Shown here: positions 7,851 to 36,027 of the stretch, piece by piece
Layout: each line of letters opens with the position of its first letter
How positions within the stretch are numbered: position 1 is the first letter of the stretch
DNA from: Sphaerodactylus townsendi
Taxonomy: Eukaryota
Assembly: GCF_021028975.2 (NCBI RefSeq)
Contig: NC_059429.1
Location: forward strand, 103,726,001 to 103,790,000
Direction of reading: 5' to 3'
DNA: 64,000 nt
Position numbers and translations under genes: made by a program
Notes under the pieces: generated by a model
What the model was told of the DNA's origin: nothing
The model's input: only the letters and a program-made list of their open reading frames with translations
Database searches by the model: none

Positions 7851-9954
7851 AATCCCAGTTTGGGGAAAGCTCCCTACAAACAGAGAACCAGCAGGTCCGA
7901 CCGAGCAAAGAGCTGCTAGTTTTCTGTCGGTGGGGAATGGATGCAAAATACTATTTAGAGCTGGAATTCTGAGACTGCCATCTGAAGAATTGCAGCGCAT
8001 GTCGTCTCAGACTTCTGCGATCATATGAGCCAGGCAGGGTGGGGAGCAGGAAAGGGGTTCATCCTGAAAAGCTGGAGTCGGGAATGTACAGACCTTCAGT
8101 GCACAAATTTGGTAATACGCTCATCAGTGAAGTTTCTTTGATGCCCTCAAGAAAAGGAGATCCTATGCAGTTACTCTTTTTAGTGGTGTGGTTGTCACTT
8201 CAAACCAACAAGATTGTGACTTCATATGGCTACAAGAACACTTCAATTTGCTTCCCAGATGCCAGCTCCATGGCAGAAGTTGTCACACCTGAAGTGACAT
8301 TTCCCCTAAAGAGCACTGCGACTTCCCAGATGAGCTGTTTGACCCACAGGGGAAGTGTTGTGGAACTCTGGGTGAAGGGTGTGGAATTCTCCTTGAGTGG
8401 CAGCTGTTCTCCAGACTACAGCGGTCAGTTCTCTTGGAGAAAATGGCAGCTCGGGAGGGTGGATTCTATGGCATCTCATTTCCCAATCTCTGCCCTTTCT
8501 AGTTTCTACCCCCTGTAATCTCCTGTAATTTCCTAACCCAAAGTTGGCAACTCTAGCTGGTTCATGACCATGAACATCCAACTATACAGTGGCAATTTGG
8601 GGTGGGGAATTGGCCACGCACACTGCTGATCGTTAAACTGGATGTATTAAATGTCTAATGGAGAAGTAAAATGGCTGTAAGTCTGCTGGCAAAAAACCAG
8701 CAAGGGACGCAGCCAAAGTGCTGTAAGTAGCTAGTTCCAATATTGCATAATCCCATCCCCATGATTCTAACAATCTCTTAAGGGCTACTCTTACTTGCTT
8801 TTTTAAAAAATATGAAGGGCAGTTTGCACAAACAGCAGTTGTTTCTGGCCGGTATCACTTCAAACTTCAGGGAGGGTGGTGTGGTGGGGATACTGCATGT
8901 TTGAACGCTTTCAAATGGAGAAGGATGGAACCGAACAGCTCTTCTTGGAAAAGCAACAATTAGCTTCTCAGGAAGAAGGCCAAAACTAGGGCTCTTCTTC
9001 TCCCAGATATCTAGATTTCCATGTGCAATTTGGGAGAGCATTCAGTCATGTAACCCTGCTGTAAATAATCTAAACCAATCAAAGCAAGTTTTATTAACAC
9101 GATCTGCTGCATCAAAAATTTCTGCAGATTACAGAGCGGTGGTAGTGATCGTGGATTTGTACTCTAGGAGCAGAGAAGGATAATGCACAGTCTTCATAGA
9201 ACTAAATTAAAAGTGTTACCACCCAATGACACCACGTTGATGCAGTGGTCAGAAATGTATTTCATTGTGCCACCACTTTTATTAGTTGAAGGTTGCATGA
9301 ATACTACTGCAAATGTGGCAGTGGATGAACTGTCAGTCTGAAGCTTTTTAAAACAAACCTGTTGATTGTTGATTTTAAAAAATGTATTTGGAATATTTTC
9401 ACCCTATTCCTGAAGCTAAAAAGCTGCCAAAATATCTTATAAAAATTAAAACGAAAGCACAATTAGTGCAATCCTTAAACCCTCCAAAGTCTCCTTAAAG
9501 TTAAGTGGACTTAATAGGGTGTAACTGTGCTTAAGACTGCACTGTAAAACAATTGAAAACAAATAACATCAATCAACAATAAAACTGCAATATAAACAAC
9601 AATATAAAACCATAGCATAAAATCATTGTTTCCAAGCGTGAAGGGGAAGGGGGGCATAAACATAAAGCAGGACAAAGATCAGAATGATGGGACGTGTTAA
9701 AATAAAAACAGGTTAGAATAGCTAATCAATAACAATCACCATCAAACCACAAACGAATGGAGGAATAATGTTTTTATTTGGTGCCTAACAAAATTGCTAC
9801 TATTAGGATGGTTGCATGCAGGGGCGGAGCGAGGGGGAATTGCGCCCGGGGCACATGTACACTCTGCGCCCCTGCCAGGCCCCTGCAGGGGCGCGCGTCC
9901 GCGCATCCCCCCTCTTCCTTGGTGCTTCACCACTGGTTGCATGTCTGGAGTAGA

Positions 9955-11690: not shown

Positions 11691-14600
11691 ATAGTTATGC
11701 TCTGTGTTTCTTGTAAAATCCCTTTAAATTTATAAATGGGATTAATTTGCTAAGGTAAGTGACTCTGCCCCACATTCCTCATTTTAAATGACCTGTTTAA
11801 AAACTATCTACGTAATGTACAGGGTACTGTACATGTATGCTAGAAACCGTAAAGAAATACAAAACCTGGTGAATGAGAATATTGTAAACAATAATTAACA
11901 TGTTCAGTACAGTACACATATTTTCCCGCTGAAACATCTGCCTTTTATCTAGTTCAGTAAAGACACATCCCATCTCAGGATAGTCTAGGAGTTGCCTATT
12001 ACTCATAACATTGCTTTGCAAATATGATGTTTTCAAAGGGAAGAGTTCCAGTGTCTCTGATGATATTTGTTCAGTACACGCATTTGAAATAGGCTTAGAT
12101 GACTTAGAACAGGGAAGGGTCAGGCATCTAGGTCAAATAGAAAGCAGAGAGAAGAATTCTGTTTTTGTTTTATCTGTCAGATGGTACTTGTGAAACAGGT
12201 TATTGTCAACTAAAGCCCAGATCAGGATATAGGGCAGCCTGTTCCAGTGTTACCACTTCACTCGCTGTGTTGACCTAAATAAGAACATTTCTATATGCCA
12301 CAAATCTACATAACAGTGAGAGAAGCAATCCTAGATGTGGTAGGCCATGAAGTGCTCTGTACATGGCACCTGGGTGTTCATGTGTGGGTGTTTGCAATGG
12401 ATAGATGAACTAGACATGAGATGCCAGCGATTTTAACTTCTGAAGATCCTCGGGAAGAAGTTGTAAAAATAACAGAGCATAATACTACATTTTACAAGGC
12501 ATGCTTAAAATGGCAAAACAGGGACAAAATAGGAGAAGTGATTTGCCAGATAATGGAAATTAGATACTATCTCTGACAAATTTGCATTCAACAGCAACGT
12601 TCCAGTTACTGCAGGAGGTGGTTCTAAGGTCTGGCACAGATGATCATTAGAGGAGGAGGAGGAGGAGAGTTGGATTTATACTCCCCCCTTTCTCTCCTGC
12701 AAGGAGACTCAAAGGGGCTGACAAACTTCTTTCCCTTCCCCCCTCACAACAAACACCCTGTGAGGTGGGTGGGGCTGAGAGAGCTCAGAAGAACTGTGAC
12801 TAGGCCAAGGTCACCCAGCTGGCATGTGTTGGCGTGTACAGGCTAATGTGAATTCCCCAGATAAACCTCCACAGCTCAAGCGGCAGAGCGGGGAATCAAA
12901 CCCGGTTCCTCCAGTACACCTGCTCTTTACCACTACACCACTGCTCCACAATAAGAGGAATGTCGTCCTTTGTGCCAAGATGTAACTAGCTCCTATTCTG
13001 AGACCAGAAGGTTATTGCTGTGTTAATGTAACAGTGCAGCAACACTGGGGCCAGGTTTGCAAAAGGACATTTCTGCAGTGTTGTTTAGCAGTTTGCCCAC
13101 TGAACATGCAATGTCAGTGATCATTAGCTGTACTTTAAAGATTAGGAGATCAGTATGATCAGGAGAAAGACACAGCAATGCTGTCTGTATTTTTAAAACC
13201 CGCCCTGGAGGCTGACCTGCTCCAGAAGAAGCAGGGCACACCCATAGAGCTATTTATGAAAACAGCAACCCAAGCTCTTGTCAGTAATCACTAAAACTGA
13301 AACCAGATCCCTCCCCAGACCAGGTACGCAAAGTTCTGCTTTGTAAAGTTATGGGATGGCAATGAAACAGACAGGTTTTGCCGTGTTCTAAGGGAAAATA
13401 GAAGGTTGAGAAATCTGGCCTATTTGGGGATAAGCTAAGTAACGTGTTCTCAATGTACATGAGCTCCATTTGAGAGGAGGTGTGTCATTAACTGAAGAAT
13501 ATTGATTCTTGTATTATGTATTTGCTTATGGCCTTTGGCTGGCAAATCTAGTTGGGGTGTGTGTGTATGTGGGGGGGGGGGGGTTATCCTGTGGCTGCTT
13601 TCTGAACTACTGCTTTTTAAGAATTTCAAAGAAAGGTAACTATCCATCATCCCTTTATTTTGGGGGGGGGGGAAACCCCAATATTTCCCCATCTTTTTAG
13701 CTGCAAATGGCCCTAGCATGCCAATCTTAATTCTCTTGTGGGGTTGAATTGACCCAGATAAGTGTGTGGAGGTTGAGCATGGTGACTGATAAAACTTGTT
13801 TTTCAGTCTTTTCACCTGCATAATTCTTCAGTTTTAAGAAGGTGTTTTATGTCTCCCTCATACCTGTATTTTTGGGTAAATTAAAGTGAATGAGAATGTA
13901 TACTCTGAAGGTGCTGGAGTAATTTATCCCCAGCAGGGGCAAACTGAGATTAGCAGGGTGAAACTGCCGAACTTTATCATACTTTTCTTGTATTTTCTCA
14001 TTGCTTTGTATTTACTTGTATTTACTGCTGTTCTATTCCTTCACTGCTAAAGGGAAGTAATTAATTAAGAACTTGGGGGATGGGCGGCTGGTAGAATGCT
14101 CATTAAAATTCCTTGGGGTTGCATTTTCTAGTACTTCTTTGGGTGCCTTTGACTCATATACTAGAACAGGATTCCCCAATGTGTGTGTGGTGTCACTCAG
14201 TGGCGTACCGTCCATGGGAACATATGGGGTCAAATGTCCCCGGGTGGAGGACATTTAGTCACATGGGGGTGGAAAATTGCCCCCACACTCCTCCTCCTTC
14301 CCCCTGAAGACCCCCCTCCCCAAGACTTCAGGATGTTGGAGGGCCCTTAATTGGACACACCTCCAAGTCAGAAGGAGCCATCCAGGCCACACCAAGTCAG
14401 CAGCATCAATCTCAATGCTTTCTCAGCAGGCCAGCTGCCACCCAAACAACCCCAATGCTTTCTGCTGGCAGCTGCTCAGTGCCTCGGGTGAGGAGGGCTA
14501 AGGAGCCCTGCATGCATTGTGGTGGTGCTGGCTTCCCGAAGCTCTGCACTGTACACACACAAGCCTCTGGAGAGAGGTGGGGGGCACAGGGCAAGCAAGG

Positions 14601-15337
14601 GGCAGGAGGGAGGACACTGGGGGCAGAATTTCACTGGCATTGGGGGGCATGCTTTTTACTGCTTGGCCTGGGCGCTATTATTTTATAAATACTCCCCTGG
14701 TACCATTGTGCCATTGAGCTATTGATATCTTTCCTGGTACCCACCAAATATTTTTAGAAAGTGGTAGCCATTAATGATTTGACTGGCTGAGCAGATTTTT
14801 TTTACATGTTTTGGCGGCAGCTGCCATCACAGAAAAGGATTTTCACTGTGTGACTGAAGGAAAGCTGCAACAGCCATTTGATGGCTGGCTCCACCTCCTA
14901 GGGCAGTCATTTTGTAGCTGCTCTCGCCACACTGTGTAAGAATCCCAAAGGTGCCCACAGGCTCAAAAAGGTTAGGGACCCATGCAGTAGATTAATAATG
15001 ACATAGATTTTTTTGTTCAGGCAAGATATATAGATAAGCTTCACTTGGTCACAAAATGGTGTTGGACAGCACCGTCAAGTTGCAGCCCATTTATGGCTGC
15101 CTCTCATGGGATTTTCAAAGTAGTATAAAATAATATTAGCTATAAAATAATATTAGTTATGCAGTGCAAAGGAACTGCAGCAGGTCTGTACATTGCAGTC
15201 CTATTTGATGCTGTGGCCAGCAATGGGGACCTCCTGTGCTGACTCTATCAATTGTATGAGGATTAAGACTGAATCTTGCATGCTTTTGAAACAACCATCT
15301 ATCATAATGTTCCATTTTTGCAGGTCTATTGACCAAC

Positions 15338-15751
15338 ATGGAATTTTCACCAGAGAAGAAAGAGGCCTTCATTGTGACTCAAGAGATCTATGCAGGCAGA
15401 AAGAGGATCCCTCTGGGGTCTATCGGATGCTTCCTTAAGGGAAAGCACAACATGGGCCGCATTGTTGACCGAAAATCTAGGCCTGTCATAACCCTGATAA
15501 GCAGCCACATAAAACCACTTAGCCACCATCAGGCTGCTCTTTTGCTCTCCATTAAGAGCCCACAAAAGCGATATAGCCTCTTTTGCAGTGAGCAGCACTT
15601 CACCTCCATTTGCTTCCTAAAAATCCATGATGTCGTACAGCTGAGATGTGGCCGGGTGTTGACAGTGGGCATTGTGAGAGGCTTCTGGGAACGGCTCAGG
15701 AATCCTGGCAACGAAGAGCTGAAAATGGTTCTCATTGAGGTGGAGCTGCTG
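15338..15751 (+). CDS. CYLD-like deubiquitinase, coding exon 1 (N-terminus, degenerate first CAP-Gly region)
   Basis: Acceptor tttttgcag at 15323, Kozak ccaacATGg; IPLGSIG / AALLLSIKSPQKRYSLF / VGIVR / VELL| parallel CYLD VPKGSIG / TELLLAITNCEERFSLF / PGVVR / VELL|; GTAAGG donor, phase 0. Confidence 0.85.
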
Positions 15752-16453
15752 GTAAGGGCGTGGTCATACTTTGTTCAGGGTATTCTGGTCAGTGTTCTGG
15801 GCCTTCCAGTAACAGGAAGCTTCTGGTAGAGTGCCTTGACCTTCCCCATTCCTCTCTCCAACCGCGTATGCATAATAATGCACTTTCAGTCCACTTTCAA
15901 TGCACTTTGCAGCTGGATTTTGCTGTTCGGAATAGCAGAATCCACTTGCAAACAATTGTGAAAGTGGATTGGAAGTGCATTATTCTGCATGTACGGAAGA
16001 GACTTTAATCTCTGGGGTTTCTGCTTCTTCCAGTTTAGCTAACATAGTGCAGTGGTTAAGAGCAGTGCACTCTAACCAGGAGAACCAGGTTTGATTCTCC
16101 ACTCTTCCACATGAAGCCTGCGGAGTGACCTTGGACTAGTCACAGTGCTCTCAGAACTCTCTCAGCCCCACCTACCTCTCAAGGTGCCTGTTGTTGGGAG
16201 AGGAAGGCAATTGTGAGCTGCTTTGAGACTCCTTGCAGGAGAGAAAAGCAAATTATAAAAACCAGTTCTTTTTCTCACCTGTGTGTCCCTCATCCTTTAC
16301 TGCACACATCTATTCTAAAATATGTCTGCAAATAGCACGGCTCTTTAAATACAACATTGCTGTTGTTGCGACAAGTCTGCAGTATAGATTTTTGCTTGAC
16401 ACAAATGCTTTACTTTCAACATTAGTCATTCTCTCTGCTTCTCACTGCATCAG

Positions 16454-16586
16454 GATCCCAGGATTATTGCTCTCAGTAACAGCTTCTCCAGACTGAAGGT
16501 TGATGCGAGTAAGATCATCACAGTTAGCTCCAGTATCACCATTTCTCCCTGCCACAAAGAAATTGAGCAAAGATGCCATCGGAAGG
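16454..16586 (+). CDS. CYLD-like coding exon 2 (linker)
   Basis: cag|GAT...AAG G|gtaaga; open frame DPRIIALSNSFSRLKVDASKIITVSSSITISPCHKEIEQRCHRK; phase 0 to phase 1 exactly bridges the neighbouring exons; no recognisable homology. Confidence 0.7.
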
Positions 16587-16932
16587 GTAAGAGGCACCAA
16601 AGGGCCCAACCATTTGACTGGATAACATTTCAGCTTTGTACCTCTCTCCCTGCTATGGGAATCTGTAGGACTGCTATAATATTTTATATACAACATAATA
16701 TAATGATTTGAAACGATTATCTTTTATTTCAGAACGTTACATTTTTTCACAGTCATCTTATTGATAAAAACTTGTGCGCAGCTTCTGTCTCTTGGAGTTT
16801 TGAGTGATGCAGCTTTAAGTGTTTGTAGTAGGGATGGGTATCAACTGAAACCCAACAATAGCTTTGATAAGAGAATAAAAATGGCTTGGCTCCTGCAGTG
16901 AATTTTTATTGGCTGAAGTGATTTCTGTCAAT

Positions 16933-17538
16933 GGCCGATTCCCCACGGTCAATTAATCATGTGATACTCACACGAAATATCAAGGATTCAGGAAGAACTC
17001 CCCGCTGCCTGATCGATGAGCAAGGATTCATCCCGGTTCTGGCGCTCATTCTCCCCCTTATCCCATGTCTTTGCCAAACCTGTTTGAAAGTACTACTTTT
17101 TCAAAAAAACACGTCTTCGATCCAGTTTGGAGGGGAGGATCGGGGGTCTAATCTTGGTTCAAATTTCCCGCCGTGGAGCGTGACACAAATGCCTTACAGC
17201 TAATCAGTGCACATGGTGCTGTTCTCGCAAGAGCACGAGAGAACGAGAACCAACCAAAAACTTGGGCGGGGGAGACGTGATGATGTTCTGACATCATAAC
17301 GTCAGCACGTTTTTGCAGGAGAAAAAAGAAGGTCCCGCCCCAACACGGCACAACAGAAGAGACCCGCCAAGCCGATCGTGTGGTAGTGGGGATTGTTACA
17401 ATTCTTGAATCCGAGATAGGCCTAGATGTCTTCACTGGAAACATGCTGTGGTGAGCAGGTTGAAACCTCGATGAAAAGGTGCAGTTTATTTTCAAACTTG
17501 GTTTGATCTAGATTGAATTTCCCGGTGGGGATTCGGCC
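16933..17538. mobile_element. Non-autonomous DNA transposon (PIF/Harbinger-like)
   Basis: TIR GGCCGATTCCCCAC / GTGGGGATTCGGCC flanked by 3-bp repeat AAT; CpG-rich interior. Confidence 0.65.
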
Positions 17539-17649
17539 AATCCAGTCCAGTGAAGCAGTCACTTTAAGTATCTAGTTATTATAGAGAAGTTGGATTGCTC
17601 CTTCTTTCAATAGGGCTGTAGTCCAATGAAGCACATACTGTTTTTCTAG

Positions 17650-17791
17650 AGGGCAGATACTTAAACCAGAACTGGGCAGAAAATAACACTGAGGCAGCTT
17701 GGAAACAGGATGTTTTGCTGAAGATGGAAGGTGCTATGAAGGGAATCCAAGGACATTGCAATTCCTGTTACCTAGACACAACCCTTTTCAG
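17650..17791 (+). CDS. CYLD-like coding exon 3 (USP Cys box)
   Basis: KMEGAMKGIQGHCNSCYLDTTLFS vs CYLD [20 protein letters not shown]; catalytic Cys TGT at 17766-17768; tttttctag acceptor, gtaggt donor. Confidence 0.95.
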
Positions 17792-17808
17792 GTAGGTGGT
17801 GTGCAAGT

Positions 17809-17911
17809 TGGTTGTTGTGAGTTTTCTGGGCTGTGTGGTGGTGGTCTAGTAGTTTTTGCTCCTAACGTTTTGCCTGCATCTATGGCTGGCATCTTCAGAG
17901 GTATGACACAG
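17809..17911 (-). mobile_element. Penelope-like terminus with decayed hammerhead motif
   Basis: Minus strand reads cctctgaagatgccagccatagatgcaggcaaaacgttagg. Confidence 0.7.
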
Positions 17912-18286
17912 TCCAATTCTAGATTGTGCCAATGCTAAATTGAGCCCAGTTATGTGGGGTATGTGTTTTTTCTCCACATTGTCTCTAACAGTGCTGCTGT
18001 TTTCAAAACCAATGTCTTCCTTTTCCTTTCCTATGTCTGCTGCTGCCTCAAAAGCAATGCTTTGGCCATTTTGGAATGTTCATTTTCCTCATCCCCTGCA
18101 AAATGGCTAACTGTAGTGGTGTTCTGTGTTCTGGCCTTGCTACTGCCTGAGAGCCATTATTATGTAGTCCAGTGCATAAGCTGGGGTGAATTAATAGCAG
18201 GCTGCTGTGGCAACCATTTTGTGCTTAATTGTGCTTAATTCTGTTTTATACATCAGTGTACATATTCTTTGTGTGTTTCTTTGCAG

Positions 18287-18394
18287 TTTATTCAGTTTTT
18301 CTTCTGCCTTGGATAGCATTCTCGATTCTGCTGAGGTACATGATGCAACAGCACAGCAAATACTGAGGGAGCAGATTGTGGAACCGTTGAGACG
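18287..18394 (+). CDS. CYLD-like coding exon 4
   Basis: LFSFSSALDSILDSAEVHDATAQQILREQIVEPLR vs CYLD LFAFSSVLDTVLL...QELLRTEIVNPLR; ttgcag/gtgagt, phase 2-2. Confidence 0.95.
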
Positions 18395-21300
18395 GTGAGT
18401 TCCACCACATTTCTAAAGTATCTGTACTGTGTGGATGAATTGTATTCTTAATGCTGTTGGGTTTTCTGTATTGGAGTATTGTGTATTATGTACTGCATGG
18501 ACATCAGTAGAGGCACTGCATGAACATCAGTAGAGGCACTTTGACTTTTGGGAAAAGAAGGTGAAAATTACACAATACCATTTAACAAATAAACAATGTT
18601 CTACAGAAAGGAGAAAAAGGGGGTTGTGTTCCAGCAATGGGAGCACATTTACTGTACAATTTAAGGGCCAGACTGAACATTACAATTTAATGTTCCCTGA
18701 AGCCTTGCAGCAGCTGTGGTGAATGGCTTTTAAAAAAGAAAAAAAGGAGACACCCCCCCCTCAAGGACTCAGAACAGAGCTAGGGGGCACCTTCCCCCCT
18801 TCTGTTTTTCTGCACAAAATCTGCACTGAGAAGAGTTATTTACCCAATCTTCCTGCTCCACATGGAATATCTTCTCACAAGGAACAGCAAAATCAAGGAA
18901 ATAACTCTCCCCAGAGTGGTTTTTATGTGGAAAACAGCTGAGGAGGGGGGAGGGAACCCTTTCATCTCCCCATGGTGCCAATCCAGACAGGTTCTCCTTT
19001 TAAAAAAAGCTGTTCCCACAGCTGCTATGTGGCTGCAGGTAATATGAATTGGACTAAGGAACCCAGACCCAAATCTCTAAAACAGCAGCGTTTAGTTTAG
19101 CCCTAAGTCTGTTTAAACCAGATCAGCCAATACTGCATGTCAGCATATGGAAGAATGATGAGTCCTGAATATTCTGGAAGTAGAAGCTCAAACAGAACAG
19201 TCTTGCTGAGTCAGACTCAAAAAATATGATCCAATCTGTTGAAATGCCATGGTTTGGGCACACTGACTTGGATCCAGAGAGCACAAGAGGAACTCAGCCA
19301 GGCTATTCAAAATTGCTCATAACCCTTCTCTGCTGCAGGCCCCTGATGATGCTTGGGGCCTCCAAAAACAGCACTGGGTGAAACATGGTGGTCTGCAGTA
19401 GAAGGGAGGTGGATAAAATGTTTCCTCCTGTGGGTGGAAAATCAGGATTTGGATCCAAGCCATTGAAGCAGTTCATTCAGCCTATTACAGCCACTGAAAG
19501 AGATCATCTTATGGATTGTATAAAATATACACAGAACATGAAAGCTGTCCAATGGACAGAGACAACTAATATACAGGAAGGTGTATAGCATCAATCAGAA
19601 TGCCAACCTGATTAATTAGCACGATCATGACAGTTTCCCAAATTTCTCATCTGTGTTTATGAGCCAAGATGAACTATAATCATTTAGAAATCTCCTGTGC
19701 TGTGAGATACCACAGTGTTTTATAGATTAATGTATCAACTAGTTGTTTGAAATCGGTGGAGTTAATTGACTAAAAAGTATTAATCAGTCAAAGCTTCCAG
19801 AAGACTGTTTTGCGATGAAGTAGCATATTTCATTATGTTGTAAGCATAAATTTTCCAGCTCACTCAGGGTAGAAATCATACTTTTATCTCTCAGCTCCAT
19901 AGGCATTCATTTCCACTGGCAGATTTTAAAGATTTCTTAGTTTTACTGAATGACTTGACTTATCAGCAAGATTTAGACTAATATTCAATGGCTCTTCTAA
20001 CTACTCTTTGTGTCCCAGTTCCTCAAGAAATCGGAAGTTGCTGTGTCAGTCTAATTGTCAGAAGAGTAGGAGTTGCTATATTAGCTACATTTTCCCCACA
20101 CATATTCCAAAGCACTCAAGGCAGTATACATCATTTTCTCTTCCTCCATTTTATCCTTGCAACAACCACCCTGCGAAGTAGGTTAAGCTGAAGGAGATCG
20201 CTCACCGCAGGCTTCCTGACAAAGCAGTGATTTGAACTTAGATCTCTCAGATCCTAGTCTGATAGCCTAATCACAACTAGGGTTGTCACTCTCCAGGTGG
20301 TAAGAAAGTACACAAAATTACACTGAAAATGGCTCACAGCAATAAAGTATTACTCAGAAGGAAAACAATTCTCAATGTATTATTTGATAAACTCATGAAC
20401 TGCACCATAGTGCCTAACAATTGAATATCATTGTATAAATCACCATAGTGTTTTACAATAAAGAATCACTGAAAATATATACAGGTACATTTATCTTCAA
20501 CCTACTGTCTACTAAACTAACCAGAACCCTGATTGTGAAATACTTCAAAAGGCTAGTGGAACATGTGAAACCTTTTAGTAATCTTTAGGGTCCATAAACC
20601 TTCTAAGTTGTTCCAAGTCAAAGTGGAATCAACTCTATGGGACCATCCTGGATAGTGGTCTTGTGCAAAGGCTCTTACTGCTGTCCTGGTGAATCTCCAG
20701 GTGATGGCTGGAGATCTCCTGGGATTACAACTGATCACCAGCAGAGATTAGGTCAACTGGATGAGATTGCTGCTTTGGAAGGTGAACTCTATGGCATTAA
20801 ATCCCACTGAAGTCCATCTCCTCCTCAAACTCTCTCAGACTCCACCCCCACCCCAATCTCCAGGTATTTCCCAACCCAGAGCTGGCAACCATAACCACAA
20901 CCCCACACTAGCTCTAACCAAGAATTAGAAGACTGTTAGCTTAGCAACAGAGAAGTGGAACAGCAGTAAAGTGTCTGCCCTTGCAATAGCCCAGGAGCAG
21001 CATAATAATAATAATTGTGCAACAGCTAGCTGTAATTGACTCATAATGAGATTTTCAAGGCAAGAGGAGAGCAGATGTGGTTACCTTTGCCTTCTTCTGC
21101 ATAGCAACCCTGGACCCTCTTGCTGTTCTTCCATTCAAATACTAACCATGGCCAACCCTGCTTAGCTTCCAAGCTCTAATATGATCAGACTGGTCAAGGT
21201 ATTCAGGCTGCTACAGCATATTATAGCAGTTCCCAAAGACTGGCTTGGGCTGTGTAGCTCCAGAAACTGAAAAACTTTTCTCTCTTTCTCTGGCCCAATA

Positions 21301-21688
21301 CCAGTTGCTTTTCCTCCCCACCCTGCCCCAACCATTCCAGGTACCTGTAATCCTGCACTCCTAGGAGACCTGCACTGCCTGTTATTTCTTTTTAAATTTA
21401 TTATTAGATTTTTAGACCGCTCTCCCCTGTTACAACAGTATCAGCTGTTTAAAAGATTTTATTTATGTAAAATCAAAAATAAACAAGGCACCCTACAATA
21501 AAACCCAGTGGAGGGTAGAACAGTGTAAATTATAATAACAATACTTGCATAATCCTGTTAAATAAAAGGGGGGGGGAGAGAGGGGAAGGGAAGGGAGGTC
21601 AGCTGAGATGGATAAATACCATAGCTGGATTCATTACTAATCACTTATAATCATAACAATATATAATCATGGAAATATTGATTGTCAG

Positions 21689-21768
21689 GCATGGCTATGT
21701 GGGAGCTGAGAACGTGATGAATTTAAGGAGATTGTTGCGATCTGACAGCTTCATTACAGAAGAGAAAG
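21689..21768 (+). CDS. CYLD-like coding exon 5
   Basis: HGYVGAENVMNLRRLLRSDSFITEEK vs CYLD YGYVCATKIMKLRKIL...GFTSEEK; gtcag/gtgagt. Confidence 0.93.
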
Positions 21769-21844
21769 GTGAGTGACAAGAGTCTGGCCTCTTTACTGGG
21801 TAGGTTACACTGCACTCCCCCCCCCACCCCGCAAAGTGCAGAAT

Positions 21845-22155
21845 ATTGCTATGGAATATGCTGCCACAGGAGGTGGTGATGGCCACTAACCTGGATAGCT
21901 TTAAAAAGGGCTTGGACAGATTTATGGAGGAGAAGTCGATCTATGGCTACCAATCTTGATCCTCCTTGATCTGAGATTTCAAATGCCTTAGCAGACCAGG
22001 TGCTCAGGAGCAGCAGCAGCAGCAGAAGGCCATTGCTTTCACCTCCTGCATGTGAGCTCCCAAAGGCACCTGGTGGGCCACTGCGAGTAGCAGAGTGCTG
22101 GACTAGATGGACTCTGGTCTGATCCAGCAGGCTAGTTTTTATGTTCTTATGTTAT
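21845..22155 (+). mobile_element. CR1 LINE 3' end
   Basis: WNMLPQEVVMATNLDSFKKGLDRFM-type ORF2 C-terminus and (ttcttatg)n tail. Confidence 0.85.
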
Positions 22156-22733
22156 TCTGAGCAGTGAGGAATTCCAAAGGTAATTCTTATCTGAGTTGAT
22201 TCCTTTTGGAAGGAAGGTTGAGCAGTCCTTTATAATTTTTGTACCATTTGTTTTAATTGCAGATACATTAGTGGAACACAAGTAGAATCGTTATTGGGAG
22301 GAGTGGGGGGAGTGTCGCATCTTTCAAGCCCTGATGGGTGCTTGGACAGAGCCATTTCCCCACCATTAAGGATAACTGAAGTAGCATTACGAAGAAATGT
22401 TACCATTCCTTTTGTCATGGGCAGTAGTTTTCCCCAGGATTCTATTTTTGGCCAATCCCATAAAAAAGAATAACCCACAATAACCAAAATACAGTACCTG
22501 TAACATAACTTTGTGGTTTCATTGTTCAAATCAGTTCTCAGATATTTGTTGAAGTGTCCTTATCTTGTAAGGTAGGTCAGCTTTGCCAGTGGAGTTGAAT
22601 ATGAGTGGCTTGCATATGACCACTTAGTGAGTTTGTAACAAAGATTTGACCTCTCAGTCACAACTCATGCTCAGCCACTATGCTGCAACAGCTTCAGGCT
22701 TTTTGCTACTCTAATGGTTGATCTGGTTTACAG

Positions 22734-22800
22734 ATCCAGAGGAATTCCTGAATGTCCTTCTAGGAGAGGTCTTGGCTATAGAGCCCTTGATCAGAATCAG
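22734..22800 (+). CDS. CYLD-like coding exon 6
   Basis: DPEEFLNVLLGEVLAIEPLIRIR vs CYLD [23 protein letters not shown]; tacag/gtaaga. Confidence 0.95.
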
Positions 22801-24341
22801 GTAAGAATTTGATGTGTTGATTGTTTTCTCTCATCCATTTGAGTGCCATTCTTGGGCCTACATGCAGTGTCAGACTTCAAGGCTTAGGGCTGAAAACTCT
22901 TACAAATAAAAAAAAAGATTCAGTGCCTAGGCAGGTCCTAGAGGTAGAGCCCATCAGTTTTTGACAAGTTGGGTGGTGGGGCCCTGAGCAGAGCACAAAA
23001 AAACCCCTGTTCATTCATTCACTTAAAGTTTAGCTTTTTAAAATGCTGAGAAGGGGGACTACCTTACCCCTTGCAGTTGAGGCAACTTTGAGAAAAAACA
23101 AAAATATCCTGCCCAATTTCTTTCAAGAGTAACCCTAATACTGACCATGAATAAAAAGAAGCAATGGAACATTGGATATGATGGGCCGATTCACAATTTG
23201 TCTTGAGATGGACTTTCAGGATGGACTTTCAGACAGACATACTTTGGGGAGATCCATACTTGGAATTAATACGCAAGCATACAGGGACTTGGTGTGGGTC
23301 AGGACCATGACACTCAGGGAGCTTTCCCAGTCAGGAGCAGCCTCTAAGCATTTGCTTTGTTATCAAAATTTACACATACAGCTGGTTACATTAGTTTCCT
23401 CAAAGAGGCAAATAACATTTCTTGGGGCCATTTCTGGTAAAGAAAATGGCATGGAGGCAGAAAGAGGCATAAGCCCCCTCTCCCCATGTGCTGCAGTCAT
23501 GATACAACTTAAGGGCAACAGGCATATTTGTATACGATCCTGTTTGCAGAGTAACGAGCAGAATGTAGCTTTGTGTGCAACTTTATAGGAACAGTTATCT
23601 AGCTAAAGAACAACCTTTTTAGCTCAGAAATCATTGGAGAGCTTTACTTAAACTGAGAGAGAAACAGACTGTATACATAAACAAAGTACCACATATATAT
23701 CGATACATTCACAGTTCATAGTTCGGTTACAATTTCAAACATAGTCTATATTAAACATTTCAGTCAGAGCTTTTTGGTCTTTCCTCAGCAAGAGTCAGGG
23801 AGCAACTGTTTCCAACTGTCACCTTTAGAATGTTCATAGAGATCTCCCAGAATTCCCTGCTGCTGCATGCAAGCAAGGCTGTAAAATCCAACACCAATGT
23901 GAGCCATCTCATGCCAGGAATTAACTTCTGAGCAGGGAACTCCCAGCCCTCATCTGTCTACAGTCTGCATAAGGCATATGTGAACTGAGTGACAGGTGAA
24001 TTGGCCTGAGGTGAGTTCACTGACTAGATGGGGATAGACTGGCCTAAAGGCTCTCCACTTCCTGGTCCAAAAGGCACATACTAGGATGGAAGGAGATGCT
24101 CACAGCTCCTCTGGGCTACACTTTGAAAACAGCTACCTTCAGAGAAAAGTCTCCTTGCCCTTTTCTCTTCAAATGCAATGGATATATTCTCGTGGCACAG
24201 CTAGGTTACTTTTGGCATGAAGAAGCTGAACTCAGAACTGCTTTCTTTATATCTCAGTGACAATGATACTAGTTGATACTAGTTGATGCACTTGTCTGGA
24301 GGAAAGGACATGTATGTTTCTAAACTTCTTTGCATTCCTAG

Positions 24342-24471
24342 GGCTGGCAACGAAGCACTCGAGTATAATTGTTATCAAATACTTGTGGAGAAAGACGGTA
24401 TGGTCCAAATGCCCACCGTGCAGCAATTACTAGAAGAATCACTTCTCTCCTATGACCTGAAGTTCGCTGAG
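24342..24471 (+). CDS. CYLD-like coding exon 7
   Basis: AGNEALEYNCYQILVEKDGMVQMPTVQQLLEESLLSYDLKFAE vs CYLD [33 protein letters not shown]. Confidence 0.95.
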
Positions 24472-24934
24472 GTGGGTAACTGAGATACATCATGTACAAT
24501 CTTTTTTTGCAGACAACAACTTGCCAGCCTCTTGTGGGGGCGGGAGCGGGGGGAGGGGGGGTAGCAGAGATCCGGAATAACAACTGATCTTCAAACCACA
24601 GGAAACAAATCCCTTGGAGAAATTGACTCCTTTGAAGGGTGGACAAGTCCCTCAAACCCTGCTGTGGCTAGCCTCCTTTGCCAAATCTCCAGGAATTTCC
24701 TAAACTGGAGTTGGCAACCTTACTCTCCAAATCTCCAACAATTACTTAGGGAAAACCAGCTCACTCTCTTTCCCCCACTCCTTCATTTAGTCTGGCTGTG
24801 CAGCCTGTTTCCACTCCCTTCAACGAAGTCAGAAACATACCAGAAAGCATTCAGTACCAGGCTTGCTAACCTCCAGGTACAGACTTCACATGGATGTAAA
24901 TAAGACACAAAATATTAAAACTTTGTTGAAGCAA

Positions 24935-25075
24935 TTTTATTTGTATGCTTACAGTCTTCTTGGTAATTTAGATGGGAAACAGACCTGTAATATTAATATA
25001 TTATTTGTATGTTTATTTATTTGTATGTTTGCAGTCTTCTTGGTAATTTAGATGGGAAAACAGACCTGTAATATT
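24935..25075. repeat. Local tandem duplication (~60-70 bp unit)
   Basis: cagtcttcttggtaatttagatgggaaa(a)cagacctgtaatatt occurs twice. Confidence 0.85.
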
Positions 25076-25491
25076 TACAGAGTTAATATTAGTGATACAA
25101 TTACAAGTTGAATCAAAACATTTTTCCAAGGTAACATGTTCCAGAGAACTCTGAGCTCTTGGTGCCAAGTAGCATGGTTCCCTACCGATTTAAGCAAATG
25201 CTGCCTCGCTGCTATGCCTCTACCAACAGCTGTCTAAAGCCCATTGTATTGTACTTTAGCACAACAGACTTTACTGCTAGTTACACATAATTTCTGTAGC
25301 ACTTTTAATATGCAATGTGCTTTGTAGCATTAATTTTTTAGTCTATGTCCCTGTAACTTGCCATTATCCAAAGTGTACAGATGGAAAACTGAAGCTAAGA
25401 TATTCTTTTCATTTGTAGTTTGCCCTCGCGGAGAACCCATGGCTGAGCTCAGATTTGAATCCCAATCCTTGTGCCAGGATGTACTACATTT

Positions 25492-25495
<4 letters not shown>

Positions 25496-25571
<76 letters not shown>
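25496..25571. repeat. Head-to-head (TG)n / (CA)n microsatellite
   Basis: (tg)n run, then tatatacacata, then (ca)n run. Confidence 0.95.
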
Positions 25572-26375
25572 GCTGCCACCAGGAATTTAATTCCAAATCC
25601 CTTTATACTTTCCCCTGAAATAGTGTGTCTGAGCTTTATAGCAGTTTCGAAGATCTATGTAGTCCTAAGGAAATACAAGTGTGGGACTCCAGGTTACATT
25701 AAACAAATTTAAATTTTTATTTACATATGTTATGTAGCTTAAATGTACAAAACTTGTACAAAAATGTACAAAAAATAAAACATACTGAGACAACAACCTC
25801 TGCAGAGGTGACTTTTCACTTTACATCAATTCACTCTCACTCCTTTACATCTTTGAGATCCTAACAGGATTTGACTCCTTTTCTAATCTCTCACTCCAGC
25901 ATAGATTGACTCAGTCTTCAGTATGGAATAATGTCTCTCTCTCCTCACTCACTCTCTCATTTCAGCACATAATACTTTCTTTCTCTCCAGTTCTGTACAC
26001 ATTCTGGTTCATTTTAGCTCAGACTGATCCTGTCAGTCTACAGCAGAGACTGCCATCTCTCTCTCAAAGTTAGCACAAACTTTCTGGCTCTCCCCCTCGG
26101 TTAAGCACAGAATCTTCCTCAGTCACTCTCCAGTGCCATCCACTCACTTCTCTCTCATCCCATTTTACTCCCCTTTCTTCTACAACTTGCGTCTCAACTT
26201 GCACATAACAGTTTTAAAAGTTACGGTCCTCTAGGCTAGAGAGGAGCATTTCTAAGATATACAGAAATATCAACAAATAACCATTCTGCAGCCCTTGTTT
26301 GTTGTCCAGTCTTTTTGAGCCAACTTCTGCAACAACCATTGGCAGTCACTCTTCAAAAAGTCTCTTCTCTTTCAG

Positions 26376-26484
26376 ATCCCTTCATGCCTTATCTTACAGC
26401 TGCCAAGGTTTGGAAAGGGGTTCAAAACATTCCCATCAGTGTATCCTTCTCTAGAGCTTGACCTGACAGACTTGGTGGACCAAG
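26376..26484 (+). CDS. CYLD-like coding exon 8
   Basis: IPSCLILQLPRFGKGFKTFPSVYPSLELDLTDLVDQ vs CYLD [36 protein letters not shown]. Confidence 0.95.
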
Positions 26485-26633
26485 GTAAGCAAGCTTGTAA
26501 GCATAGCCAAAATTTTATGCTAGTTTAATCTAAGAGTGCTCCATTGGCTTTTTATCAAAGTAAAATGTTGGTACTACAGCAAAGCAGTCATCCTTGAAGG
26601 CAGTAACAAACCTGGGTCCTTGTATTATTGTAG

Positions 26634-26749
26634 CTTCTCAGACTTGTTGTGCATGTAGTGGGCAAGCACCGTATGAATGCTCATGGTGCCACTTGGATTC
26701 CTTCCTGAACCCAAGCCACTTGAGACCATTGAGAGGAATTGCTAAGAAG
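26634..26749 (+). CDS. CYLD-like coding exon 9 (B-box insertion, degenerate)
   Basis: SQTCCACSGQAPYECSWCHLDSFLNPSHLRPLRGIAKK vs CYLD [39 protein letters not shown]; tgtag/gtagga, phase 1-0. Confidence 0.9.
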
Positions 26750-27322
26750 GTAGGAACACCATACAGTTCACCTGAGGGTGGGAATTGCAGGGGGAAAGGG
26801 AGGGCTCTGGAAAGGCATGAGGAAAGGTCACTTGCAGATATGGAGCCAGCCAAATGGCTAATTTCATCTTAGCCTCTCTAAGGCTCCAGATGCAGTTGGC
26901 TTGTTGTCTGGCAGACAAAGAATGATTAGGTACCTACCATTTTCATACAAAAGGCAGCTGCTGTTCTCAGTAGGAAATGGCATCAGTCACCTGCTAAGTT
27001 TCATATAGCTGTTACAAGTGTAGGAATCCCACCAGGAAAAGGGTACAGCCCTATTCATACAGCCACGGGGGTTGAGCAGATATGAGTTCGAACAGAGGGT
27101 GAATCCCCGTTCTACCATGAAAATGGCTGGGTGACCTTGGGCCAATTACTCTCAGTTTAACCTGCCTCATAAGGTGACTGTTGTAAGGATAAAATGGGAG
27201 AGAACAATGTTGTAAAGAACTTCGGGTCCCCATAAGGGACAAATAAAGCTTCTACAATTCTTAAATTTCACATCCCCCCCCCCCCTCGAAACTCCTGACT
27301 GTTGTCTCCTCATTTCTTCCAG

Positions 27323-27512
27323 GTACCTCCTCATCAGCCCAGACAGAAGTATTCCTGCATAGGACAGGAACTCAATAGCTCCTCTACTAAGTCGCAAATA
27401 TTGGAGTTGTTTGCAGTTTTGTGCATAGAGAGCAACCATTATGTGGCTTTTGTTAGATATGGAGCTTCCAGACAATCCTGGCTTTTCTTTGACAGCATGG
27501 CTGGCCGATTAG
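27323..27512 (+). CDS. CYLD-like coding exon 10 (His box)
   Basis: [36 protein letters not shown] vs [40 protein letters not shown]; His at 27437-27439, Asp at 27491-27493. Confidence 0.96.
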
Positions 27513-28627
27513 GTAAGGCAGCATCTTGGGGCTGGTTTTTAACAGGTCCAAAGAGCTTATGTTTTTGCAGGTTATAAAACGAAACCAACTGGCACTGACC
27601 ACTGGATATTTAATTCAGATTTGCGCCCCAGGACTCTGCCACCAGCCTTAGTTCTCCAGAATTTCACTTCAATCATTAGATGAGTCTCTCTAGCAGTGCT
27701 TGAGAACAAACATGATTAGTGCTTTACTGTAAACAAGTTTCCTCCACATTCTCAATGCAATTTAATAAAAAGAAATACAAAAGGTGAAAGGAAATAGAAA
27801 TGTAGTTGGAATACGCACACTTCAGGACAAGAAGAGTAAACTTAGACTGGGGCTTTTGGGAGAACCAGGATGGGTTCCCACACTGTATGACCTTTATGAA
27901 CAGTATAGGCTTAGTTTAGTCTGTGCTACTTCACTCACCTCCACCCTGCAAGCAGGCACAGGCAACAGGAAACCCCAACACAGACTTTACTGGCTACACA
28001 GGAAATCCAAGGTTTTTTTGATGAGTGACATTCTCCCTGCCTCCTCACACCCTTCAAGGATGAAGTAGGGATATTTCTCTAAGGACCTACGAATGCATCC
28101 AGCCACGTCTTGGGGGGATTCATATAGAACTACATTCTGATTAACAAGGGACAATCCGAGCCTTGGAGCAGCTTGTTTATGAAGTACATCCTGAATGTTT
28201 GAGCAATATTTTGCAGCATGGGAAACTTATGGAACGCTCCATTAGTGTCTAGCTCCTATTGGTATAATGCCTGAGGATGCCAAAGGAGGTACATTCCTTT
28301 ATGCTTAGCCTGGCATTAATTTATTCAGGCAAACCAGGGGTCTTCAAGTTTTCCTTTAATCAGAGCTACTTCTGAATAATGAAAATAGCCTGAGCTATGC
28401 CCCAAAGCATGTTACCAAGTTTTGTTCTGTCCTAGCAATAGGGGAGACACTTGATCTAGACTTAATTTAACTGGGTGTTTTCTAGTTTTCCTATTTAAAT
28501 TAACCCTAATATTTTCATCCAAAGCACCGATAAACCTTACTCAGCTCCTTAGTAAATGGATGTTTCTCAGCATAACAATGACCTTTTCATTATTCATACC
28601 TTTGTAACTGATCGTGTATTTCTTTAG

Positions 28628-28824
28628 AGAAAGAGAATGGATCACACATCCCCTTGGTAAAGGCATGTCCACAGCTTGGACACTATCTGGCAATGGCACC
28701 AGAGGACATTTCTGCTGTGGATATCAAGCAAATGGATCAATTTTCCAGAAGACTCTTTTGTGATTCGTATACATTCATGTACCAACGACCAAAATTCAGC
28801 TCTTACAGATGTGAATTCAGATAG
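28628..28824 (+). CDS. CYLD-like last coding exon
   Basis: ENGSHIPLVKACPQLGHYLAM...RRLFCDSYTFMYQRPKFSSYRCEFR* vs CYLD [21 protein letters not shown]...[21 protein letters not shown]; TAG at 28822-28824. Confidence 0.95.
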
Positions 28825-31371: not shown

Positions 31372-31413
31372 TCAATCATAATGGATGGCAGTGAAGAAGA
31401 TTATCCAGACAAC
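31372..31413 (-). CDS. RAB5IF: RAB5IF (OPTI/C20orf24) coding exon 4
   Basis: VVWIIFFTAIHYD* matches the RAB5IF C-terminus; ctag acceptor. Confidence 0.95.
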   Translation of the reverse strand, partial: VVWIIFFTAIHYD

Positions 31414-32399
31414 CTAGATGGGAAAAAAGAACAGCAACTTCAGCAAGAGCCTTTACTCCTTACCAGCACATTGTCCCTAAAACAATCCTATTTTGTTTTC
31501 CTCTGCTTTGAATAACAAAATTTTACCACAGTCCTGTGGCCAGGAAGAAACATAACAAGAGTCAGCAATCCTGCTGTTAGAAGTTACACTGTTTTCCGTA
31601 GTGAAGAAGAACTACTTCTCCTCAGGTGTCCATTTCTACGAGGTACACTGGGACAAAAAAAAAGTGTGTGTTTGTGTGTGGAGTTAGTGCCATGTTTAAA
31701 TCCAGAACTTAGCTGGAACTTAAGTGACATAATGATCTAATCTTCTTAATAACTGGCAAGGCAATACTACTGTTACTTCTGTTTAAGCCCGCTGGCCTAA
31801 TTCTGCATAGGACAGCATTATAAAACACATGAAAATCAATTTGCATCGCTTTACCATTTGTATTTTGGATACTTTGCACAGTCAGTAGAGTCAAATGGCA
31901 AAGTTTTTTTGACCTGCAGTTCAAAGAGGTACAGGACAAGGATGTCACTTTTTAACAATTCCCATCAACTCCATGTACACAGATGTGTCAAGGAGAAAAC
32001 TGGGATGAGTTTAGTATGTGCGAGCAAGTTTTTTTGACAGGAGAGCATACACACAGATATATATACAGATGAGCACAAAAGCATAATCAGCTTGAAGTGA
32101 GTATGCTTTTGTGCTCATGCATACATAAATGTGTGTGTGTGTGCTCCCCTGTCAAAAAAAACTTGCTTGCCAGGAAAATCTTTGCTTACCCAATTCTTCT
32201 AATGTACCTATCAACCACTATGACAAAAAATACATACAACTCCCTAAAGCTGCAATCATACTGTGCAACTCATATTTTTGTTGCCTCACTTCTCTGCCCC
32301 TTTCCCCACTAATTAATTCTTAAGTCTCTGAAGTGATCTGCTCCTTATTTTATATGCTAGATCTGTTCATAAGACCTTATATCTATAAATACACATTAC

Positions 32400-32529
32400 C
32401 AAAAACAGTGCAAAAGATGTCATGAACCCTTCCTTTGTTAGCTCCCATGTTCCTCCATACTCCTCTTCATCTATCTGTTGGAAGCTACTAAAATAGAGGT
32501 ACAGGACACCGGCATTTATGAGGCAGAAT
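32400..32529 (-). CDS. RAB5IF: RAB5IF coding exon 3
   Basis: FCLINAGVLYLYFSSFQQIDEEEYGGTWELTKEGFMTSFALFL; ttcag/gtaatg. Confidence 0.97.
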
Positions 32530-32618
32530 CTGAAGAGGAAGAAAATAACAGTGATTTACAGCCATCATCTTAAAATTACAGTGTGAAAATATTAAAATAC
32601 TTTAGTTATGATCTATCG

Positions 32619-32755
32619 CAGTGGTGGCGAACCTTTGGCACTCCAGATGTTATGGACTACAATTCCCATCAGCCCCTGCCAATTGGCCATGCTGGAAGGG
32701 GCTGATGGGAATTGCAGTCCATAACATCTGGAGTGCCAAAGGTTTGCCACCATAG
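32619..32755. mobile_element. Palindromic hAT MITE
   Basis: Same family as 2292-2437; further copies at 46950-47095 (TSD CCCTAGGG) and 49173-49302. Confidence 0.85.
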
Positions 32756-33672
32756 CTCTATCAGGAAGATAACCCCTGAAAACCTCACTGGAATTGGGAC
32801 CACTATTCCCGTGCATTTCAATGTGACATGTATAGGAGATTTTCCTGGTGGCCTGAAGCCCATATGGCAGACAGACAAATCGACAAGAAGAGCTACGGCA
32901 AGCACCACCTAGAAATCCTGAAACATTCTGCTTTGTAGAACTGTAAAGCTGGCTAAGTTGGATACATGAAATGCATGCAAGGTCTCTGGATACATGAAAT
33001 GCATGCTACTTTGTTTATTAACTACAGTTAGCACTCTCTACTGATTACTACTTATAACAACATGTTGCTAGAAATGGGGAAAAACACGAATTTCCAAGAT
33101 ATCAGCATAACTGCTTAGCCTAAGCTACCATTTTGAGCACAAACGTGTACGGAGTTGAAAAGTATAAAGACCTTAGGTATCAGAGTGACAGTCATCCAAG
33201 ATTTCAATTTTGCTCTTCAGACACAAGTGGTTGAATCCAAACTACACTGGCAATTTCCACTGATTCTTCTTCTTCATTACAGGCACCCCCCCTCCCCAAA
33301 TGTGTCATTCCTCAAGATTCCCTATCCTCCAGGAACTACATTTAATTGAGATCATGGGCAGAAGTTGAAGATGGGAAGCAGGAAAGTTCCATTCTGTCAC
33401 TGGAAAATTTAGGTTGGATCTGACCCTGCTTTTAATGGTTACAAATGCTACAAGAACCCACTGACATTGTGACTTCCCTGAGCAAAAAATTAGTCACCTT
33501 TTCATGCTTCTGTTATGCAAAATCCAACGCAAGAAGACCGCAGACTCTCACAATTAAAAAGTTGCTAACTTGCAGCAATTTACATAGAGGATTTCTATCA
33601 CCTTACCCCTTCAAGTGTTTAATGTACTTATTGCTACAAATGATACCTTATTTTAAAAAAGAAAAAACTTAC

Positions 33673-33776
33673 ATTGCTATGCCTATAAATCCCTTTAGCG
33701 GAACAATGCCCCAGATCACTCCCAAAATAACAGCAATGATCTGCCGGAACCAATAAATCACATCTAGAAACTCATC
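33673..33776 (-). CDS. RAB5IF: RAB5IF coding exon 2
   Basis: DEFLDVIYWFRQIIAVILGVIWGIVPLKGFIGIA; ctgcag/gtaag. Confidence 0.97.
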
Positions 33777-34714
33777 CTGCAGAGGAAAGACAAGTTCAAA
33801 ATTTGTTATTTCTGAATACGCCTATAATTCATACACATACCTTCCCAAGTGATTCCTGTGTGAACAGAAAAAAACAGGTTTTGACAATACCTGGACTCCC
33901 TTGTCTTCAGGGGATAGTTATTACAGACATCCCTTCCATATTATGACTTTCCCCACTGCAGTTCTGATATATCGCAGGTCAATTTAGGAAATTAAATGGG
34001 AATTTGGGGGGGAGTTATGTGGAAGCCACAGATGACGCACAAAGGCCCCTCTTCGTGGGGCACATTTCTAGCCGGGGGGGGGGGGTGTGAGCGGGCGGGG
34101 GGAGGGAGGGCGAGCGAGCGAGCAAGTCGGCGGGGGAGCGGACGGGGGGGCGAGCGAGTGGGGGGGGTGTGAGCCAAATGGCTCTTTGGTGGTGAGCCAA
34201 ATTTGGTAGTGAGCCAAATGGCTCTTTGAGGGGAAAAGTTTCCCGACCCCTCATTACTCAGTGTTACGGTGTGTGTTTTAGTTGGTTATAACAGGTTGAG
34301 CCTAGTTATTGTATTACATTTTAAAAGAAAAACTAACCAGCTATTCCCACAGAACTTCCCTCCATTAAGAAGTCCGTTCTTGAGGCCCTGACGAAGGTAA
34401 GAGTGACTCTCATTACCCCTCGATCTTGTTGGTCTCTAAAGCACTACTGTACTCAACTGTGGACCAACCCGGCTGCGCTCTGGGACTTCCTTAACAAGAC
34501 AGACTCCCAAGTCTCCTCCCTTCGGAGACTTCATCAAATGTCAGGACGGCCATGTGGCCTTACAATCCCTCCACTCAGCCGTCCCTTCTCCCCTTGTGGG
34601 GCGCCCAGGGCTACCACTCCCACCGCGCCCCTTCCCGATCGTGGCCCTCTCTCTGCGGAGGTCGCCGCAGGGCGAAATCTCCCCTTGCTAAATACGTCCC
34701 GGGCCCGGCCTCAC

Positions 34715-34858
34715 CTTGTCCTCCCAGGCGGAGTCGCTCCGCAGCGCCTTGCTCCACAGAGAGCCCCGCAGGACGCCGCCGTTGGCCACCGGGTGGTGCT
34801 GCTGCTGCTGCTGCTGCGGGTGCGACGTCTGATCCTCCTTCCGCCGGCCGCCGCTCAT
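34715..34858 (-). CDS. RAB5IF: RAB5IF coding exon 1
   Basis: MSGGRRKEDQTSHPQQQQQQHHPVANGGVLRGSLWSKALRSDSAWEDK vs human MSGGRRKEEPPQPQLANGALKVSVWSKVLRSDAAWEDK; GTGAG donor; four exons total 420 nt = 139 aa. Confidence 0.96.
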
Positions 34859-34879
34859 CGTCCCCCACCAGGCCCCGAA

Positions 34880-35797: not shown

Positions 35798-36027
35798 CTT
35801 GAGGGTCACCAAAAGGCAAATCCCACCTTTTGTGTAGCAATTGCTGATCAACCCTCAAATGGACAGGAAAGGCAAAACTGAAACCGAACACTTTGCACAC
35901 TCAGGAGCGGTCCCTAATCATTCACCCAACTGGGCACACAGGTGTAAGACACTACATAAAGCACCTGGCATCCCCCAGCACTTATGGCATAGACCTCAGC
36001 CACTAGTTCAAACACTATATGTTAACA

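Follow-up and report, generated by a model that had tools for sequence, protein, structure and literature searches.

A third jawed-vertebrate CYLD paralogue in the gecko Sphaerodactylus townsendi: a probable gene for a compact, 561-residue deubiquitinase

Here we analyze a CYLD-family gene located at positions 15338-28824, on the forward strand, of a 64,000-nucleotide stretch of the genome of the gecko Sphaerodactylus townsendi (hereafter, the window; contig NC_059429.1, positions 103,726,001 to 103,790,000; source record, chromosome CM037618.2 of assembly GCA_021028975.2). This gene is very probably the S. townsendi copy of a third CYLD paralogue of jawed vertebrates, and a functional gene for a predicted 561-amino-acid (aa) cysteine deubiquitinase that belongs to the subfamily of the ubiquitin-specific proteases (USP; peptidase family C19) named for the tumor suppressor CYLD. 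In an earlier note made from the sequence of the window, it was described as an old CYLD duplicate that had retained its introns and was, accordingly, not a retrocopy; both parts of this description are borne out by the comparisons reported below.

The list of open reading frames in the window shows the gene only as fragments. The 11 exons proposed in the earlier note were recovered with exactly the given lengths (414, 133, 142, 108, 80, 67, 130, 109, 116, 190 and 197 nucleotides (nt), in order), and when joined locally, they were in frame as claimed, comprising 1686 nt and 561 codons with a sole, terminal stop. All internal exon borders are of the AG...GT form, with donors of the GTAAG or GTGAG type and acceptors with a pyrimidine tract, and the start context, ACCAACATGG, was graded as a strong Kozak sequence. 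Enumeration over this stretch gave 36358 chains that fit the proposed exon lengths with an open phase, and 5156 chains that also contain all three catalytic motifs; because so many motif-bearing chains are open, lengths and GT-AG borders are insufficient to fix the model. The chain was fixed by identity: the RefSeq protein XP_048353935.1 (P0001) is a suffix of the joined product, and residues 30-590 of the UniProt protein A0ACB8F5G5 (P0151) are identical to it. The exons were searched singly, and whole-protein analyses were run on P0151. Exon 10 (searched as 27323-27511) matched the solved CYLD USP domains 3wxe, 3wxf, 3wxg and 2vhf with E-values of about 1e-13 and, among 1.84 billion representative proteins, retrieved P0001 first, at 100% identity, followed by CYLD-family proteins. 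No match to solved structures was found for exon 1 alone, Pfam searches with single exons returned nothing useful, and there was no Rfam match over the window. An extended (GT)n/(CA)n microsatellite in intron 7 (25480-25590) yields spurious open frames and chance GT "donors" that fit the proposed lengths.

Exon 1 (15338-15751, with the exon beginning at the acceptor 15323|15324 and the conserved start ATG at 15338) encodes an N-terminal domain common to all CYLD paralogues, through the first half of CAP-Gly 1; exon 2 (16454-16586) encodes the end of this domain and a linker. The Cys box, GIQGHCNSCY, is in exon 3 (17650-17791), with the codon of the catalytic Cys222 at 17766-17768. Exons 4 (18287-18394), 5 (21689-21768), 6 (22734-22800), 7 (24342-24471) and 8 (26376-26484; IPSCLILQLPRFGK...) encode further parts of the USP domain, which is interrupted by the B-box insert of exon 9 (26634-26749). 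Exon 10 (27323-27512) carries the His box and the catalytic Asp, with the codons of His472 and Asp490 at 27437-27439 and 27491-27493, respectively, and exon 11 (28628-28824) supplies the C-terminal end of the USP domain together with the stop codon.

Contrary to the novelty implied by the earlier note, public annotation of S. townsendi already includes the gene under the name CYLD-like. The RefSeq model (432 aa, "ubiquitin carboxyl-terminal hydrolase CYLD-like") is N-truncated and starts from an internal Met encoded late in exon 1. In the GenBank/UniProt model (590 aa), translation begins in an upstream exon (14415-14487, forward strand) that is spliced to the acceptor 15323|15324; this exon and the initial 14 nt of exon 1 add 29 residues that have no counterpart in other species in the alignment. 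When 34 orthologues ranging from sharks to lizards are aligned, the ATG at 15338 coincides with the conserved initiator Met. Exon 1 is coding because its ratio of nonsynonymous to synonymous substitution rates (dN/dS; pairwise Nei-Gojobori estimates, with bootstrap confidence intervals (CI)) is 0.18-0.26. Judged by these alignments, the 561-aa model starting at 15338, the one that the lizard, amphibian and fish proteins match, is the best of the three and corrects both public models.

Two protein searches returned CYLD-family proteins of four length classes. Class A (~555 aa), found in lizards and amphibians, contains only the UCH domain by Pfam; class B (~670-750 aa), from cartilaginous fishes, lungfish and ray-finned fishes, contains one CAP-Gly domain; class C, the canonical CYLD (~900-960 aa), contains three CAP-Gly domains and the CYLD phosphorylation region (PF16607); and class D (~785 aa), represented in birds, turtles, crocodilians, tuatara, squamates including snakes, amphibians and fishes, contains two CAP-Gly domains. 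S. townsendi carries its own class D copy, P0321, on the unplaced scaffold JAHVXK020000029.1; the Cys box of this protein is gapped and no Pfam UCH match is on record for it, which could be due to an assembly or annotation gap or to a real lesion.

In a maximum likelihood tree of 56 proteins (quick search, LG+C20 model, supports from the Shimodaira-Hasegawa-like approximate likelihood ratio test, canonical CYLD sequences from fish only), the jawed-vertebrate proteins formed three clades, namely, C, D and A+B, each with a support of 100. The order of branching inside A+B matches the species phylogeny, with chondrichthyans and actinopterygians diverging first; the tetrapod class A proteins are monophyletic (99) and form the sister group of lungfish class B (88). 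A constrained grouping of class A with canonical CYLD lowers the log-likelihood by 132 units and is rejected by the approximately unbiased (AU) test with p = 3.9e-42; the phylogeny thus does not make this gene the true CYLD orthologue. Megalops and the elephant shark, Callorhinchus, each possess a canonical CYLD plus a member of the A+B (third) lineage. The ancestral vertebrate set of CYLD-type genes numbered three rather than two.

Nine of the 10 introns of the gecko gene share both the alignment column and the phase with the introns of class B, class D and canonical CYLD genes, and the tenth is located within a few columns of its counterpart, a displacement attributable to alignment slop. 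The nine shared introns therefore identify an ancient duplication at the DNA level, and the possibility that the gene is a retrocopy was dismissed on the same grounds. The neighborhood points the same way: the gecko gene is flanked by a gamma-glutamyl-transpeptidase (GGT) family gene and an EMC6 family gene, in the order and orientation GGT(-)/gene(+)/EMC6(-), which is identical in elephant shark. Paroedura shares the EMC6 neighbor with S. townsendi, and in the teleost Myripristis, the class B gene is found in the order GGT/gene/TOP1. Together, the tree, the AU result and this shark-to-gecko microsynteny show that the duplicate is old.

All three catalytic motifs reported in the earlier note, the Cys box, the His box ESNHYVAF and FFDSM, were confirmed, placing the catalytic triad at Cys222, His472 and Asp490. 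The whole protein matches the Pfam UCH family (PF00443) over residues 214-490 with 29.3 bits, compared to the gathering score of 23.9. A count over the alignment showed Cys in the catalytic column of every row with sequence at this position; the printed Cys-box block retains the residue in all rows shown, with P0321 gapped, and in the printed block that includes His and Asp, both catalytic residues are kept in every row. The AlphaFold2 (AF2) model of the protein matched the CYLD USP domain 3wxf with E = 1e-23, a template modelling score (TM) of 0.74 and 43% identity, and identity to CYLD structures overall is 43-44%; the next family matched was USP7, with an E-value of about 6e-3. At one position encoded by exon 4, Leu is found only in canonical CYLD, with Asp in this gecko and His, Arg or Tyr in the relatives; this position probably corresponds to human CYLD Leu622, which is required for SPATA2 binding. 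Beside the active site, the motif that follows the catalytic Asp is FFDSMAG in the tetrapod members of the lineage (FFDSMAS in two of the 13 aligned), a clade-specific form, and FFDSMAD in the other aligned CYLD-family proteins (FFDSMSD in two sharks).

Residues 1 to ~165 are modelled with confidence as one domain (AF2 predicted local distance difference test (pLDDT) score of 88, predicted TM (pTM) of 0.82) that is conserved from sharks to lizards. Profile comparison with hhalign aligned it to the N-termini of canonical CYLD and of paralogue D with probabilities of 97.7% and 98.1%, respectively, and the homology ends in the middle of CAP-Gly 1, at a common phase-0 intron. The second half of the domain is a small barrel of the SH3/Tudor-like type. 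A more specific fold relative was sought and not accepted: the best hit, with Z = 7.8 and a root-mean-square deviation of 2.1 over 64 aligned residues, is within the background.

The remaining accessory modules of CYLD are reduced or missing. No Pfam match to CAP-Gly (PF01302) was obtained for the S. townsendi, Paroedura or amphibian orthologues, compared to one such domain in the fish orthologues, two in clade D and three in canonical CYLD, and the gecko protein has no match to PF16607. The single CAP-Gly domain of the fish orthologues, located just ahead of the USP domain, is missing in all tetrapod forms, where its exons are replaced by the 133-nt exon 2. In the B-box, the second zinc site (CxxC...HxH) is replaced in all five squamates aligned, S. 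townsendi included, whereas the four Cys residues of the first site (CxxC...CxxC) are retained in S. townsendi and in most of the others; in the amphibian and fish orthologues, all eight ligands are intact. The lineage shed modules stepwise, first CAP-Gly in tetrapods and then half of the B-box in squamates, with purifying selection acting throughout.

Across squamates, where a dN/dS analysis had been suggested in the earlier note, the values for lizards are 0.21-0.28, far below 1, that is, the gene evolves under purifying selection. Specifically, dN/dS is 0.25 (CI 0.19-0.35) for Sphaerodactylus versus Paroedura, 0.21 for Sphaerodactylus versus Phrynosoma and 0.28 for Paroedura versus Phrynosoma; for paralogue D in the matched lineages, the range is 0.11-0.20. 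The pairs were drawn from species with a recorded genomic locus, which excluded the three isoform-X2 proteins P0351, P0158 and P0282. Selection is the strongest in the USP core (0.12-0.24), and geckos, a lacertid and iguanians all have a full-length open frame.

When the caecilian orthologue was used as the query, the matches came from amphibians, non-snake squamates and fishes. No member of the third lineage was found among the protein-set matches from birds, turtles, crocodilians, tuatara, snakes or mammals, although a gene missing from protein sets may still be present in the genome. Of these six groups, all but mammals are represented among the paralogue D matches. This contrast between the two lineages across hundreds of annotated sauropsid genomes suggests that the third lineage was lost repeatedly in amniotes; the absence in snakes, which are well represented for D, may be an additional loss within squamates. 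The statement in the earlier note that there is no such human gene is compatible with the lack of a mammalian match among the protein hits and with the CYLD duplicate that Vlasschaert et al. 2017 (PMC5381560) report as lost in mammals.

Three other interpretations of the gene have to be considered. The gene might be decaying, as a young unitary pseudogene or under strongly relaxed constraint, with the frame open only by chance. Several observations point in this direction and weigh against a functional gene: the region of the B-box and the insert that follows it evolves in a near-neutral regime (dN/dS of 0.55-0.70), and four of its zinc ligands are gone; squamates sit on a long branch (0.55); and the apparent repeated loss in amniotes, with no members among the protein matches from birds, turtles, crocodilians, mammals or snakes, implies that the gene is dispensable in many animals. 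Furthermore, the search for junction reads advocated in the earlier note, performed on three RNA runs labelled as this species over positions 14300-18500, revealed no splice joint at the listing threshold. In these runs, exons 1-4 are covered at about 0.5-1.5x, with essentially no cover on non-repeat intron bins; most of the reads are 90-95% matches, with loose ends, to intronic repeats at 15851-16273 and 17825-17965 (hundreds of reads), which presumably are copies of an expressed interspersed repeat family. In Gekko kuhli, the available model (P0002, KAL8179355.1) is a 267-aa fragment that skips the Cys-box and B-box exons and reads the equivalent of exon 4 in another frame (WIAFSILLR), reflecting, possibly, either poor annotation or a damaged gene. 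Nevertheless, decay appears improbable given that the frame is open at full length in three groups of lizards, that the dN/dS values, with CIs far under 1, come close to those of paralogue D, that the triad and the USP core are conserved, and that the splice sites are all canonical and the start context strong.

The notion that we are looking at the gecko's true CYLD orthologue in a badly diverged or incompletely assembled form deserves almost no credence, even if RefSeq labels some members of the lineage plainly as "CYLD" and the USP domain shows the level of identity to CYLD structures given above. The AU test, the lack of PF16607 and of any CAP-Gly domain, the GGT and EMC6 family neighbors shared with the third paralogue of sharks, and the co-occurrence of both genes in Megalops and Callorhinchus already refute it. 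Finally, the protein could be produced and maintained by selection but act mainly as a non-catalytic binder, or else prefer linkages other than the K63 and M1 linkages of CYLD. The loss of CAP-Gly and of half of the B-box zinc ligands, and the clade-specific change from Asp to Gly after the catalytic Asp motif, could be accommodated by such a function. However, conservation of the triad and the surrounding residues across the clade would be unexpected for a pure scaffold, and the USP core has the lowest dN/dS of all regions, so we regard this alternative, too, as unlikely. The interpretation of the gene as a functional third paralogue encoding a deubiquitinase is the one we favor; the low confidence of the USP part of the AF2 model (mean pLDDT of 60 for the whole model) counts against it.

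The intact triad, the low dN/dS, the absence of CAP-Gly domains and the half-lost B-box together back the prediction of an active but differently regulated deubiquitinase. Mechanistically, we expect a papain-like USP hydrolase in which, as in CYLD, Cys222 serves as the nucleophile, His472 as the base and Asp490 orients the His, with ubiquitin isopeptide or peptide bonds as the putative substrates. Targeting would occur via the N-terminal domain rather than through CAP-Gly-mediated contacts, and the enzyme would not be coupled to the partners of CYLD's accessory modules. Because the CAP-Gly domains, the phosphorylation region and the Leu that we equate with human Leu622 are all lacking, recruitment and regulation are likely to be unlike those of CYLD.

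Comparison with the known relatives delineates what is shared and what is specific to this lineage. With canonical CYLD (human CYLD; zebrafish Cylda; structures 2vhf and 3wxe/f/g), the gecko protein shares the USP fold, the Cys, His and Asp motifs, the intron positions and phases in the USP domain, the N-terminal region through the first half of CAP-Gly 1, and the place of the B-box insert. Canonical CYLD, however, is about 950 aa long, with three CAP-Gly domains and PF16607, none of which are present in the 561-aa gecko protein; in addition, the gecko protein has Asp instead of Leu at the exon-4 position, is encoded in another neighborhood, belongs to a separate clade and, like those of other squamates, is without the second B-box zinc site. 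The fish third paralogue (~670-750 aa, named "CYLD" or "CYLD-like"; for example, Callorhinchus P0188 and Protopterus P0189) is orthologous by the tree and shares the N-terminal domain, the introns and, in elephant shark, the flanking genes with their orientations, but retains one CAP-Gly domain before the USP domain, along with an extra intron there, and an eight-ligand B-box; in tetrapods, the protein is shorter by about 170 aa. The ~785-aa clade D proteins also derive from a CYLD duplication, with the same USP architecture and introns and no mammalian match, but comprise a separate clade, contain two CAP-Gly domains and are retained in birds, turtles, crocodilians, tuatara and snakes.

The GGT family gene is the upstream, head-to-head neighbor, with its 5' end on the reverse strand at 5725-7585 and the first coding exon at 7328-7585 (666-aa product, PF01019); its N-terminal peptide looks like that of GGT7, and the stretch at 6000-8000 is CpG-rich. 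The downstream neighbor, on the reverse strand at 31372-34858, encodes a 139-aa product of the EMC6/Rab5ip family (PF07019), which is probably the RAB5IF orthologue; this gene starts in a GC-rich stretch at 34000-36000. Human GGT7, RAB5IF and TOP1 are all located at 20q11-q12, in a region that is not known to contain a CYLD-like gene, a layout that fits the remark in the earlier note on a locus lacking the human gene. Further downstream, an open reading frame on the reverse strand at 40085-40453 encodes a reverse-transcriptase-like peptide (FADDTKL...) and looks like a fragment of a long interspersed nuclear element (LINE).

Duplicates of CYLD outside mammals have been reported previously. Vlasschaert et al. 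2017 (PMC5381560) describe a CYLD duplicate, CYLDL, that was deleted in mammals and is present in non-mammalian vertebrates. This description fits the lineage analyzed here, but two such lineages exist, and the available text names no accession; the ~785-aa clade D is probably the CYLDL of that study. A zebrafish study (PMC8201528) names CYLDA and CYLDB, and a catfish study (PMC9095985) names Cyldl, and the database names in fishes likewise indicate more than one non-canonical CYLD gene. What is new here is the corrected start codon, the placement of the gene in the third lineage rather than in the ~785-aa one, and the documentation of stepwise module loss under constraint.

The known mechanism of CYLD is unchanged by these findings and the gene was already public, so that the finding is of modest interest. 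Tentatively, and with more doubt than confidence, we suggest a broader significance: the tetrapod third paralogue could represent a natural minimal CYLD, confined to amphibians and non-snake squamates, and if it is an active enzyme that has substrates or a linkage preference of its own, it would constitute a natural experiment on the role of the accessory modules, while the single "CYLDL" of the literature would turn out to be two ancient paralogues with different histories of loss.

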